A DNA stretch of 64,000 nucleotides, from NCBI GenBank assembly GCA_043228905.1, contig JBHGNT010000008.1, positions 7,192,001 through 7,256,000 of the forward strand, written 5' to 3'. The notes beneath the pieces were generated by a model. It saw only the letters and a program-made list of their open reading frames with translations, did not search any database and was not told where the DNA came from. Shown in pieces: positions 12,998 through 18,327 of the stretch (the stretch's first letter is position 1; every line of letters begins with the position of its first letter). The stretch comes from Azolla caroliniana (taxonomy: Eukaryota; Plantae; Polypodiophyta). The translations under genes and the position numbers were made by a program.

Positions 12998-13528
12998 CTC
13001 AGCTGAAGGCATCAACGAGATCTTTCTGTCTCTTTTATCCACATACTCCAGGTTTCTACTGAACCTCTGAATTATTTCCTGACTTGTGCCTACCCGCAGG
13101 CCGAAACAACGGAGATGGCGGGCCATTGGATATGATAATCCACTATTGCCTTCGCCAAGTGAAGATTATCGCAAATATGATAATACTGCCTGATCTTCCG
13201 TAGTGAGTGCACGGGTTTCCGTGGGGTCTTAAGGATCCCGCTGAACCTAAAGAAGAGCTGTTGAATCTTTGACGGCAGGCCATACAGCTAGCTGCCTCTT
13301 TCAGGCATCATTCCTCTTAGCTTAGAAAACGATGGCTTGCTCTTCTTTACCCGCGCCTCTTATCTTAAAGGGAAGCGACCTTTACTTAGGCGGGTTACTT
13401 AGATTACATAGCCAATAATTTTTTCTTTTCTTGGTATTGAAATTCTTTTTGAAAGGAAGATAGAGCCACTCTCGGCTCGGTTTTACTACTCGCGTCGCGA
13501 CTCGCGAGTGAAAAACCAACCCGACTCG

Positions 13529-13783
13529 TCAATCAGATTCTGAATAAACAATCTCGTAATAATTCTGATGACGCATTCTATCAATCATACGTTTCGATGA
13601 TATAATACTACATGCTTGAAGTACTATATCAATCTTTGGTGCACACGAAGCGTATTTGCAAGCAACCAAATAACAATCCTCTTTGAAGGAAAATGAATAC
13701 AAAAAACATTCTTTGTTGAAATTGATCCACTGACTCATCATAAAGTCCCTAGAATAAGAAAAAGATCCATGACTGCTCTTCAT
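13529..13783 (-). pseudogene. matK: Plastid maturase K, N-terminal fragment
   Basis: FLYSFSFKEDCYLVA...KRMIDRMRHQNY resembles matK FLYPLLFQEDxY...KRLIxRMRQQN. Confidence 0.65.
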
Positions 13784-13800
13784 TGTGGTAGTCTCCCAAA

Positions 13801-14150
13801 CTAAAAAAAAAAACAACGGAATAAAAAAAGAATCAATATACTAGCAAATCTCCTTCTACACTTTGCAGCACAGTCCCATACAGGTGAGTTAGAGTGTTCT
13901 AGAAGCTTTGGTGTATTCGCTTCATCGGAGATATATCTCGAAATACTTTCATTAATGTCTTTGTTTGAACCCCCCCCACGACTCGAACTATCTAGAAGCA
14001 GATTCCAAATCTGCCTACCCGTAGTGGAAAGAACATCATTCGATAATCTTGTTCGGGTAGATTCGATGTGGGGTAACCCAACGAGAGGCGGATTCCCTGC
14101 GGGTTCTAACGAGATTGACGAGCCTATGGATTTTTTATCAACAATCAACG
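13801..14150 (-). pseudogene. Probable plastid large-ORF fragment (possibly ycf2)
   Basis: Open 115-codon frame inside the NUPT; identity not certain. Confidence 0.3.
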
Positions 14151-14281
14151 ATCTAGACTAATCCGCCGACAGAAATGTACATTCATCAAGCGCATATGGA
14201 CTTACTACCAGTAGCAGTAGAGGGAGAATCCTTTCCTTTTTCCGAGAATTTGAACTTTCTTATTTTCCCGCGTTTTGTTCT

Positions 14282-15102
14282 TTAATTAAGGGGAGTCATT
14301 GAAAGGACGGGTTCGGTATCACGATCAATTCCTTTCTCAAACCCGGCTGCAGCTGCACGAGCCCTTCCCGCGTGCCATAGGTGACCCACGAAGAAGAAGA
14401 ATCCTAGAACGAAGTGAGATGTTGCTAACCAACTTCGGGGAGATACGTAGTTGACGGCGTTGATCTCAGTAGCTACTCCACCCACGGAATTTAAAGAGCC
14501 CAGAGGTGCATGAGTCATGTACTCCGCAGATCGCCGCTCTTGCCAAGGTTGTATATCCCTCTTTAACTTACTAAGATCCAAACCGTTAGGCCCTCTTAGA
14601 GGTTCTAGCCAGGGAGCCCGAAGGTCCCAGAAACGCATAGTTTCCCCCCCAAAAATGATTTCTCCCGTTGGAGAACGCATAAGGTATTTACCCAAACCGG
14701 TCGGTCCCTGAGCCGAGCCTATGTTGGCACCGAGGCGTTGATCCCTGACAAGAAAGGTAAAAGCTTGAGCCTGAGAGGCTTCTGGTCCAGTGGGACCGTA
14801 AAATTCGCTAGGATATGTTGTGTTATTGAACCAGACAAAGCAGCAAGCTGTGAAACCAAAAATAGCAAGAGCTGCTAGACTATAAGATAAGTAAGCCTCT
14901 CCAGACCAAACAAAAGCACGACGAGCCCAGGCAAAAGGTTTTGTTAGTATGTGCCAAATTCCCCCGAAAATACAGATAGATCCCAACCAGACATGTCCCC
15001 CAATAATATCTTCGAGGTTATCTACGCTTACAATCCAGCCTTCCCCACCAAAAGGAGATTTTAGTAGATAACCAAAGATTACACTTGGACTTAGGGTAGG
15101 AT
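14282..15102 (-). pseudogene. psbC: Photosystem II CP43, 3' fragment including stop
   Basis: [28 protein letters not shown]...[20 protein letters not shown]. Confidence 0.97.
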
Positions 15103-15111
15103 TTTGGTAAA

Positions 15112-15390
15112 GTAAGTTGTTCACCCGTCTCAAACGCATATCCGATATTTGCACAGCAGAATTATGAGAATCCGCGCGAAGCTACAGGGCGCATTGTATG
15201 TGCAAATTGCCACCTAGCAAAGAAACCGGTAGATGTGGAGGCTCCGCAATCTGTTCTTCCCGATACCGTATTTGAAGCAGTCGTTAAGATTCCCTATGAT
15301 ACATAGATAAAACAAGTCCTTGCTAATGGGAAAAAGGGTGGGTTGAATGTAGGTGTTGTTCTTATTTTACCCGAAGGGTTTGAATTGGCA
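15112..15390 (+). pseudogene. petA: Cytochrome f fragment
   Basis: [30 protein letters not shown]...GFELA; internal TAG at 15304-15306. Confidence 0.95.
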
Positions 15391-15830
15391 ATTTCTAAGC
15401 GCATAGCTTTGTAATAGTTTTATAAAGCTTCTGCATACTCTCCTTCGGATTGGGCCGACATCCGTTACGGTTGCTAATGCGAATAAGCCCCGTTCCAAAA
15501 CCGTACGTGAGATTTCCATCTCATACGGCTACTCCCGCCCGAAGCACGGGGGGTAGTAACGTTCGAAATAAATTGATTATTTCCTCCCATTCACTCGTGG
15601 GATTCGGGCAATCCGGGGAGGACCGATCACCGCTGACGGACCCCCCCCTCGGGAATCTATACATTCCTTATCAATGTGTGGATGGCTATCTCTCGAGCAC
15701 AAGCTGATGAATTTCGGGCCAGATGTGAGAGACGGAGCACCTGATAACGCATATTCACGGACCAGGAACTACGGGATCACCCTCATCATTTGACGGGTGA
15801 CGGAGGGATCATACTACACGAGCCTTTTCT
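15391..15830 (-). pseudogene. ycf3: 3' part of ycf3 group II intron 1 plus start of exon 2
   Basis: [23 protein letters not shown] (15463-15391), preceded by domain V AGCCGTATGAGATGGAAATCTCACGTACGGTT; far boundary approximate. Confidence 0.9.
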
Positions 15831-16115
15831 AGGGTTCGAACTACGATTAATCCGTACCAATCTACCTTTAAACTTCGTAACAAAAAAGTAAATCGATGCC
15901 AGGTACGTAACATCGACGCTCGATCAACGAATTGCGAAGAAGTGAACTATCTTTCAATCGAAAATATACGGTAGTGGGGTAAAACGATCATAATCACGCA
16001 ATTTGTCTATTGTTTCACAAATTTATGCCGTGGTCGGAGAATTCTTGCCCATCAGGTTTTCTTTTCCTTTTCTTTCTCTCCTCTTAAAAAATATATAAAA
16101 TTTCCTGATCAACAA

Positions 16116-16472: not shown

Positions 16473-16696
16473 CGTTAGATATAGCAAATAACGGTTCAAT
16501 CTATTTGGTATTATACCTATAAAGACTGAACTGTTTTTAGAGCGAATCACACTCCTTCATATACATCGGGAGTCCATTGATGAAATGGAACGAGCGAGAG
16601 CTTAAAAGCCATCCCCGCCAAGACTAACGCAAGGGATATATGGATTGCCAAAGGATCGAGCATACTGTTTAGCAAGAGCCCATCAACTATTTTATT
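16473..16696 (-). pseudogene. ndhB: End of ndhB exon 1 plus start of its group II intron
   Basis: [19 protein letters not shown] followed by intron start GTGTGATTCG at 16552. Confidence 0.9.
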
Positions 16697-16697
16697 A

Positions 16698-16898
16698 ACG
16701 AAAGAGGTAAGCACCAAGTCGTTATCCACAGATAGAGATCTCAACTGGACTCCCGAAGCCGAATTAGAGTTAAACAGGATCCCCGGTTTTGTAAGGGGTA
16801 AAATCAAGAGAAATACTGAAATCTCTGCGGAACAAAAAGGCATTGCAGAAATAACAGTCGATGTTATGTATGCAGCCAAAGAAAAACTAAATTCTTGA
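16698..16898 (+). pseudogene. chlB: Light-independent protochlorophyllide reductase subunit B, C-terminal fragment
   Basis: [12 protein letters not shown]...[25 protein letters not shown]...[15 protein letters not shown] (my translation; not in the ORF track). Confidence 0.9.
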
Positions 16899-17241
16899 TT
16901 CGATCATTTTGTTTATTACTAGGAATAAAAAAAACTCAGATAATTTAAATTTGTTTCTAACCATCCATAGTGTTGGAAGCAAAAACGACGACTATCTCAA
17001 TTATTGGGGGGAAAGGGGGTATATTTTATTTTGCAAAAAGGGGATCACGGCTTAGCCCAACTCACTGTTGGATCTTATAGTAGACCGCTTCTTCAGCCAC
17101 AATGAATGCATAAATGATGTTGCAAACCAAACCACTGCTAGCCAATATCTTACGACATCCAGGCCGCAGGTCGATTGGGGGTAAACTTCTGTAGGTCATA
17201 TCGTTGATTTCTCTAGCGGAAACGATGGCATCATTTTGAGG

Positions 17242-17355
17242 GTTGAAGCATTATTATCCGGAATTGTGCTAGGTTCGATCCCAATAACCTTAGCTGGTTC
17301 ATTTGTAACCGCATATTCACAATACAGACATGGTGACCAGTTGGATATTAGATAA
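17242..17355 (+). pseudogene. petG: Cytochrome b6/f subunit 5, lacking a start codon
   Basis: [37 protein letters not shown]. Confidence 0.92.
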
Positions 17356-17696
17356 AAATTAACAACTTTGGGTCTGATAGGACAATTAAATGAATGGGAA
17401 ATAGAAATACAGATATCTATAGATATCTTATGCTTTTTTTTTTCCCATTTCTATTTCTGTTTCCTTCTAGCACCCGATTTCCACCCATCAGAAGCCTTTT
17501 TCTGTTACATGCAGAGAGGTCGAATCCATTATTCCATTGCTTTTTAATGTCTGGTTGCAAATTCAAATACATAAATGATGTGCGGCGTACTTATTGCTTT
17601 CTCGTACCGCCAAAAGCCAAAAGCATTATTTTATTAGTAATCCCGATTAATACAACAATAAGTGGAATGTGAGAGAAAAAGAATTTGGAATTGATT

Positions 17697-17801
17697 ATGC
17701 CCAGATCTCAGAGAAATGACAATTCTATTGATAAGACTTCCACAATTCTAGCAGATATTTTGTTACAAGTTTTGCCGACCACTGAAAGAGAGAGGAAAGC
17801 T
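17697..17801 (+). pseudogene. ycf3: ycf3 exon 1 fragment
   Basis: [35 protein letters not shown]. Confidence 0.9.
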
Positions 17802-17833
17802 GGAGGTCACAGGTTCGAATCCTGTTATTCCGA
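17801..17833 (+). pseudogene. 3' half of a plastid tRNA (probably tRNA-Pro)
   Basis: GGAGGTCACAGGTTCGAATCCTGTTATTCCGA: T-arm ACAGG-TTCGAAT-CCTGT plus acceptor 3' strand; no anticodon present. Confidence 0.7.
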
Positions 17834-18327
17834 TTCAGGAACAAATAAAGGCGAAGGAATATAAAGGAGTGTCAATTATCCCATATTCATTTTCTTCGTT
17901 CGAGTAATAAGAAATACGAAATCTCATACGGATGAAACAAGAAACTCTGGCTATGTCCAAGCTATGATTTTTTTACGTTGTTGAACCCCCTCCTCAAGCC
18001 TCTTGTTCTCGGATTTTTCTATTATCCAAAAATCCCGCACAAAATAAAATTATTTGTTTAATTTCCATTCCAAGTACGGTGGTCTGACAACCTTCCTCTT
18101 ACCAGATAGGGTGATTCCGTGTGCTTGACTAAACCCGTCTCAAAAAAAGAATTTCTTTACGGATATAAATGAAGCAATCCCGAAGTATCTTGATTAGGTT
18201 ATTGGTGTTGACACAGGTTTGCTCTTAAAAAGCACTGATCTACCTCTTCGGCGGATATTCTCTGTCGCTTGAGAGGAATATACGATACTCTTTACACCTG
18301 AAAGTTCGTAAGACGAAGAAGAGATTT

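Follow-up and report, generated by a model that had tools for sequence, protein, structure and literature searches.

Organelle DNA insertions in nuclear genomes are divided in reviews into three classes, namely colinear nuclear plastid DNAs (NUPTs), rearranged clusters, and mosaic clusters combining NUPTs with nuclear mitochondrial DNAs (NUMTs) (PMC12863932). Complex NUPTs were also reported in earlier studies (Noutsos 2005; Huang 2004; both given here as cited in PMC12863932). A survey of nine plant genomes by Portugez, Martin and Hazkani-Covo (2018) yielded 1,782 numins, mosaic insertions uniting plastid with mitochondrial DNA in the nucleus, which make up 2-10% of the insertions there (PMC6215612). 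Both blunt joins and microhomology occur at the junctions of numins, with an enrichment in young insertions, and the authors concluded that the fragments come together before they integrate or while they do so (PMC6215612). For ferns, no survey of NUPTs or numins was among the 12 papers listed by a literature search for fern NUPTs. Here, we describe an organelle DNA mosaic at positions 12998-18327 of a 64,000-nucleotide stretch of the Azolla caroliniana assembly (contig JBHGNT010000008.1). This whole stretch is called the window, and positions without a contig name refer to it. The window comes from the nuclear genome of a non-seed plant and is crowded with nested long terminal repeat (LTR) retrotransposons; the mosaic interrupts the 5' LTR of one of them. 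It consists of 18 pieces and was very probably captured as an organelle concatemer, whose pieces were already fragmented, by end joining at a break in this LTR.

The mechanism is thus an already described one (complex NUPTs, numins), and the locus fits it. As in these systems, several non-colinear organelle fragments lie at one nuclear site and are connected by blunt or short-microhomology joins, with concatenation presumably taking place before or during the capture at the break; as in recent numins, the young insertion retains its end-joining signatures (PMC6215612). The locus is notable for how many pieces it has, for its pristine condition, for the empty site that it carries with it and for being in a fern. 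The worked example of the numin survey has 4 pieces (PMC6215612), whereas 18 almost undiverged pieces are packed into 5.3 kb here. Furthermore, because the pre-insertion allele is preserved in the sister LTR, both terminal junctions can be read, which could not be analysed in the numin survey (PMC6215612); that survey covered nine plant genomes, whereas our case comes from a fern, and its mitochondrial share is only probable. Experimental plastid-to-nucleus transfer in tobacco similarly proceeds by integration at breaks with small target deletions and little or no homology, but it concerns a selected laboratory marker (PMC12181080; PMC3698918), whereas the insertion described here is natural, unselected and made of small pieces only.

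The carrier of the insert is a Ty3/chromovirus LTR retrotransposon at 12908-23980, as revealed by repeat search and alignment. It possesses two LTRs with TG...CA ends, a 5-bp target-site duplication (TSD) GAAAC on either side (12903-12907 and 23981-23985) and an internal region on the forward strand (18672-23536) encoding gag, protease, reverse transcriptase (RT), RNase H, integrase and a chromodomain. The 5' LTR is present in two parts, both on the forward strand. Its left part (TGTCAGG...CATAGGAT, 12908-12997) was delimited by alignment to the 3' LTR, and its last three bases, GAT, are common to piece 1 of the insert; the right part (...TGCTGACA, 18328-18671) was found by repeat search and LTR alignment. 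The organelle-derived block is therefore bounded on both sides by nuclear DNA, namely by the two halves of one LTR. If positions 12998-18327 are left out, the alignment of the LTRs spans 434 positions, of which 8 are substituted, and has a single 10-bp gap. This gap corresponds to ATTATTTTCA, located at 23627-23636 in the intact 3' LTR (23537-23980, forward strand) and replaced by the insert in the 5' LTR; ATTATTTTCA is also present in other copies of the LTR family, on contigs of public runs. The LTR alignment reveals no TSD at the borders of the insert. The empty site in the sister LTR and the presence of ATTATTTTCA in other copies mean that the insertion into one LTR occurred after the integration of the element, with the loss of 10 bp and without a TSD. 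A preliminary description of this locus, made from the sequence alone, had reported the empty site, the 10-bp loss, the missing TSD and the 8 LTR differences in 434 positions, and its coordinates and counts proved exact.

To the insert and its flanks (12700-18650) contigs from four public runs were assigned, and the borders of pieces were set at the points where plastome contigs abruptly leave the window. Donor coordinates were obtained by looking up an 84-aa matK open reading frame (ORF) inside one of the pieces, followed by walking along plastome contigs of the same type. These "type I" contigs are L002/L093, L003/L099, L098/L104 and L107, to which the near-identical ycf3-psaA contig L008 was added; the public runs and contigs carrying the same organism's plastome are referred to as organism A. 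The matK piece matches the 84-aa ORF exactly, and this ORF adjoins the MatK ORF on 13 plastome contigs. Note that only the ATG version is on record in the look-up, and a 95-aa version starting with TTG is not. Sister samples within the same metagenome studies contained a second plastome type (L088, L089, L091, L094, L095, L103, L105 and L009), which probably stems from related species and served as the outgroup for polarising substitutions. In most of the mapped pieces its identity to the donor type is 93-99%, with a drop to 78% in one spacer of L009.

Every base of the insert is accounted for by the 18 pieces. Comparison with the fetched plastome loci by BLAST assigned 14 of them to plastome contigs of the same type at 99-100% identity, and depth or a related plastome identifies two further pieces as plastid (piece 5, psbC; piece 17, a tRNA half). 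The preliminary description had counted at least ten recognisable pieces of about 30-820 bp; there are 18, and their actual sizes are 146-944 bp. Its gene assignments held throughout: all named gene pieces are present at the place and on the strand given (Pfam, Rfam, plastome contigs), ycf3 exon 1 on the forward strand mapping to the ycf3-psaA contig. The stretches it had left unassigned are mostly plastid spacer or ycf2, with two that are mitochondrion-like by depth. Pfam recognises psbC (-), petA (+), rpl14 (+), psaA (+), an ndhB-type antiporter (-), the C-terminus of chlB (+), petG (+) and, weakly, the N-terminus of matK (-), whereas Rfam finds domain 5 of a group II intron at 15464-15534 (-), adjoining the start of ycf3 exon 2.

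The plastid pieces follow each other in this way. Piece 2 (234 bp, 13295-13528, +) is the rps7-psbA spacer of the inverted repeat, identical to L107 10598-10831 (100%) and present at inverted-repeat depth. Codons 1-84 of matK with upstream sequence make up piece 3 (338 bp, 13529-13866, -; L093 17053-17392), in which the length of an A-run is the sole difference, and piece 4 (293 bp, 13867-14159, -; L107 14877-14585, 100%) is an internal part of ycf2 from the inverted repeat, within an 1821-aa ORF with an AAA domain. The 3' two-thirds of psbC and the downstream spacer form the longest piece (piece 5, 944 bp, 14160-15103, -; Pfam PSII, E = 1e-78), which is covered by one 6989-bp organism A plastome contig with 1 difference and is 92.6% identical to L009 of the second plastome type. 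Piece 6 (288 bp, 15102-15389, +) extends from the end of the petA signal peptide to about residue 84, includes the plastome's own in-frame TAG and differs from L104 12502-12789 at 3 positions, all of them G:C>A:T in the window. The 3' end of ycf3 intron 1, containing the domain 5 found by Rfam, and the start of exon 2 constitute piece 7 (195 bp, 15389-15583, -; L008 1084-892; organism A contig, 0 differences). It is followed by inverted-repeat sequence from upstream of rps12 (piece 8, 248 bp, 15583-15830; L093 6637-6884 and L107 5251-5004, 100%), by the petB-psbH region (piece 9, 233 bp, 15830-16062; L098 11727-11495, 100%) and by a spacer with rpl14 codons 1-31 (piece 10, 151 bp including TTTCT common to piece 9, 16058-16208, +; L098 5495-5645, 100%). 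Piece 11 (264 bp, 16210-16473, +; L008 2456-2717, 100%) contains psaA from about codon 13, piece 12 (225 bp, 16474-16698, -; L093 14784-15008, 100%) the end of ndhB exon 1 and the start of the intron, and piece 13 (260 bp, 16698-16957, +; L093 19411-19152, 100%) the 3' end of chlB and a spacer. Beyond piece 14, piece 15 (239 bp, 17241-17479, +; L104 15471-15709) contains petG, starting at the third base of the initiation codon, and downstream sequence; it has 1 difference, 17330 G>A, changing Arg to His. Piece 16 (322 bp, 17480-17801, +; organism A contig, 0 differences; L008 1-275) comprises the first 104 nt of ycf3 exon 1 and the sequence upstream of it. A tRNA 3' half and a spacer form piece 17 (287 bp, 17801-18087), plastid by depth and matched by one plastid-depth contig with 0 differences; it was not found in any fetched plastome locus and may derive from a region outside those fetched. 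The ndhC-atpE spacer (piece 18, 243 bp, 18088-18330; L104 2673-2915; 1 difference, 18146 G>A) closes the insert, its last three bases TTT being common to the LTR.

The sources of the 14 mapped pieces are scattered over the large single-copy region and the inverted repeat of the plastome, in both orientations, and are not colinear. In the plastome, none of the pieces adjoins or overlaps another; the measured gaps between nearest neighbours range from 616 bp to 9.6 kb, which bears out the earlier statement that these loci are not adjacent in plastomes. At least 95% of the plastome is unrepresented in the insert. At the source, eight pairs of pieces lie at most 5 kb apart, where 8.1 would be expected if the points were random (P = 0.54), and the pieces have no breakpoints in common. 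Shattering of a few larger fragments in place was rejected, as shared breakpoints are missing and the source clustering is random. A random sample from a pool of small fragments is a better picture than one shattered molecule. Of the phrase "shattered and re-ligated" in the preliminary description, the joining of fragmented DNA can be kept and the single broken molecule has to be dropped. The insert thus resembles the products of chromothripsis in its many end-joined pieces of random order and orientation, but differs from them in that the sources are no more clustered than chance predicts, do not share breakpoints and do not represent one shattered molecule.

The donor plastome possesses chlB, carries psbA and ycf2 in the inverted repeat and has matK beside ndhB and chlB. 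Several of its genes are split by in-frame stops (petA, 81 + 218 aa; matK, 84 + 400 aa; rps7, 53 + 90 aa). Together, these features point to a leptosporangiate fern with U-to-C RNA editing. Searches with PsbC and PetG gave cluster representatives of at most 95% identity, and the best hits of PetG were in ferns and lycophytes. The stops in petA and matK, at 15304-15306 and 13529-13531 of the window, were considered as decay of the nuclear copy, and this was rejected, as plastome contigs carry the same stops (L099 2613-3551; L002 10001-11509). We presume that they are sites of U-to-C RNA editing. Being present in the plastome itself, they indicate that the insert keeps the unedited organelle sequence.

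When the sources were extended beyond the borders and combined with the contig borders, 17 junctions could be scored. All of them are direct, and plastome contigs depart from the window at every piece border. No base is shared at 8 junctions (9.6 expected for blunt joins), one base at 5 (4.8 expected), two bases at 1 (1.8 expected) and three bases at 2 (0.6 expected), and a 5-bp overlap (TTTCT) connects pieces 9 and 10; filler is represented by a single A at 16209, after piece 10. Scoring of junction microhomology, which had been proposed beforehand, accordingly gave overlaps of 0-5 bp, near the chance expectation for blunt joins. Both 3-bp overlaps are the two chromosome joins (GAT on the left, 12995-12997; TTT on the right, 18328-18330), whereas the piece-to-piece joins are mostly blunt; this is only a hint, as the sample is too small. 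A cutting-motif or restriction-site artefact was rejected, since 26 donor breakpoints showed no base preference and the junctions lack adapters and common restriction motifs. With overlaps of 0-5 bp, a single filler base and 10 bp lost at the target, the locus bears the marks of classical end joining known from complex NUPTs and numins (PMC6215612), and we infer that this pathway was used.

The insert is almost undiverged from its plastid source. Five substitutions (15114, 15117, 15356, 17330 and 18146) and one difference in the length of an A-run were found in the 2721 bp that map to type I contigs. At each of the five positions, both plastome types have G:C and the window has A:T. As G:C is kept in both types, the five changes took place in the nuclear copy, and their type is that of cytosine deamination. 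These derived changes argue for real, methylated nuclear DNA and not for mis-assembled organelle reads. Together with the single differences of pieces 5 and 14, there are about 7 differences in 5333 bp (0.13%). For the LTR pair, 8 differences in 434 positions correspond to 0.92% per lineage. If both were of equal age, 86% of the 15 changes would be expected in the insert, but only 7 are observed there (binomial P = 4e-4); the insert is therefore significantly younger than the LTR pair, in line with the preliminary description. It is about one-seventh as old as the element, with a wide error. Divergence from the plastome, which was to be compared between fragments according to the same description, is uniformly low across the pieces.

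Two pieces are not plastid and are probably mitochondrial DNA. Piece 1 (300 bp, 12995-13294) is covered by one contig with 0 differences, and piece 14 (283 bp, 16958-17240), which may be one piece or two, has one C>T difference; both are absent from all fetched plastome loci. The depth of piece 1 is 27 in run X2 and 96 in run X1, compared with plastid depths of ~480 and ~290, and that of piece 14 at position 17068 is 40, 131, 183 and 415 in the four runs. Taken together, the two pieces have depths of 27-40, 96-131, 183-323 and 400-415, with plastid single-copy depths of ~480, ~290, ~3500 and ~2700. Hence, they co-vary with each other and not with the plastid, at 5-45% of its depth, and are ~10-50 times deeper than contigs resembling single-copy nuclear paralogues in the same runs. 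An exact-ORF look-up for a mitochondrial identity of piece 1 gave no match, and neither Rfam nor ARAGORN had any hit in pieces 1, 14 and 17. The 2295-bp contig containing piece 1 departs from the window on both sides, and the mosaic was thus not pre-formed in that replicon.

The lengths of the pieces (146, 195, 225, 233, 234, 239, 243, 248, 260, 264, 283, 287, 288, 293, 300, 322, 338 and 944 bp) are unusually uniform. The median is 262 bp, and 17 of the 18 pieces are in the range of 146-338 bp. Random breakage with the same mean would place 29% of the pieces in this range, and 17 of 18 was never reached in 100,000 simulations. Since every base of the insert is accounted for, the narrow range does not result from overlooked small pieces. 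This near-uniform length, and the blunt internal joins as opposed to 3-bp microhomology at the chromosome joins, could reflect a two-step pathway, in which the DNA of both organelles would be cut into units of ~250 bp by a size-setting process, ligated extrachromosomally and then captured as a concatemer at the break. We regard this pathway as doubtful; protected nucleoid units or a processing/import limit may have set the size.

In our preferred reading, i.e., capture of an organelle concatemer by end joining, a double-strand break would have occurred in the 5' LTR of the integrated, decaying Ty3/chromovirus element. Its repair by non-homologous end joining would have captured a concatemer of 16 plastid and 2 probably mitochondrial pieces, which would already have been small (~150-340 bp, one of 944 bp) and mutually unrelated when joined. 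Most pieces would have been ligated blunt or via 1-2 shared bases, and both chromosome joins would have been made via 3-bp microhomology with the loss of 10 bp of the LTR. Afterwards, the insert would have gained a few methylation-type C>T changes. That fragmentation preceded integration, in one end-joining event and not by slow decay of a long NUPT, was also the conclusion of the preliminary description, and the scattered sources, direct junctions and ~0.13% divergence speak for it.

Several points weigh against this reading. No contig bridging any junction was found in the four public runs, the derived alleles of the window were not seen in any of the three organism A runs, and two ORFs that span junctions have no record in any assembly. 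The absence of junctions and alleles is uninformative, because contigs drop variants of ~10-20x beside plastome paths ~200 to several hundred times deeper. Furthermore, the mitochondrial origin of pieces 1 and 14 is deduced from depth alone, and one event is not formally separable from several closely spaced ones; a single event is what we infer from the locus. There is also a slight excess of overlaps of at least 3 bp (3 of 17 junctions, P ~0.05-0.06), which leaves room for some microhomology-mediated joining.

Ectopic filler DNA can be copied during the repair of breaks in plants, as is generally known, and the mosaic might have been built at a different nuclear site or in the mitochondrial genome and then copied, as filler that was already complete, into this break by synthesis-dependent repair. 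We consider this unlikely, as the mitochondrion-like contig of piece 1 and every plastome contig depart from the window at the piece borders, and a divergence of 0.13% demands an equally young donor, none of which was seen among the contigs compared, short of a whole-genome search. A relay through plastid DNA residing in the mitochondrion (mitochondrial plastid DNA, MTPT, as the source of a NUMT) finds no support in the contigs compared, which do not amount to a full mitogenome: the pieces are identical to plastome contigs of plastid depth, and the piece-1 contig diverges at both ends. An assembly or library artefact, in which organelle fragments were chimerically joined in reads and assembled into the repeat, would agree with the lack of independent junction support and of recorded junction-spanning ORFs mentioned above, and with the near-identity of the pieces to a very abundant plastome. 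Nevertheless, it is very unlikely, given that the block sits between the halves of one LTR with a tidy 10-bp loss and 3-bp microhomologies, that the junctions are free of adapters and common restriction motifs, and that the block has five derived G:C>A:T changes which neither of two plastome types carries and which mark methylated nuclear DNA.

Rearranged NUPT clusters are sometimes explained in the literature by scrambling (PMC12863932), i.e., by deletions and inversions acting later on a long colinear NUPT or on successive hotspot insertions. For our locus such a history is highly improbable: ~18 rearrangements with clean junctions would be needed against only ~7 point changes, and a divergence of ~0.13% leaves no time for them; in addition, divergence is uniformly low across the pieces, and the non-plastid pieces would be left unexplained. 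The uniform length of the pieces could also be due to limited processivity of a polymerase, if the mosaic was made by replicative template switching (microhomology-mediated break-induced replication) from many organelle templates, and the one 5-bp and two 3-bp overlaps would be compatible with this. However, template switching requires priming homology, whereas 8 of 17 junctions have no shared base and 5 of 17 have one, which is the chance level for blunt ligation, and we consider it extremely improbable.

The locus is valuable as a specimen, and it is also a documented case of an organelle mosaic from a fern. Each of its 19 junctions is readable to the base, the pre-insertion sequence is located ~5 kb downstream, the LTR pair provides an age ceiling, and the donor plastome is essentially unchanged. 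This opens questions that are blurred in genome-wide surveys, such as the joining of fragments to each other as compared with their joining to the chromosome, the preferred fragment size, and the rate at which methylation-type mutations set in.

Some further plastid-like sequences were met in the contig comparison. The donor-type plastome recurs in many plant-associated "leaf metagenome" assemblies. Low-depth contigs in runs X7 and X11 have 10-30 mismatches to the psbC (14770-14965) and ndhC-atpE (18089-18327) pieces; they represent older plastid-derived copies that have diverged and lie at other places in the nuclear genomes of organisms A and B. Contig L092 (ENA ERZ27227276 k141_9791), from the same sample series, is cyanobacterium-like and contains psbA and rps12 beside genes for an ABC transporter, an SLH-domain protein and MazE; it has an exact 53-aa ORF in common with the inverted repeat of the plastome, probably within the 16S rRNA region. 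Contig L001 (GCA_029782595.1, JARCCX010137719.1) is unrelated and 2.9 kb long; it carries psbD and, after it, a partly duplicated psbC, and is 81% identical to the psbC piece of the window.

The carrier is itself nested in another Ty3-like element. The RT/RNase H of this outer element lies upstream of the left TSD, its RNase H stopping at 12907, and the element resumes after the right TSD with an integrase zinc domain from ~24001. The internal reading frame of the carrier is split into several ORFs, and the insert, located in a dead element inside another element, has no evident function. At the chromodomain-coding end of the carrier's integrase, a tandem duplication of ~57 bp is present at 23300-23404, where Pfam recognises two Chromo stretches.

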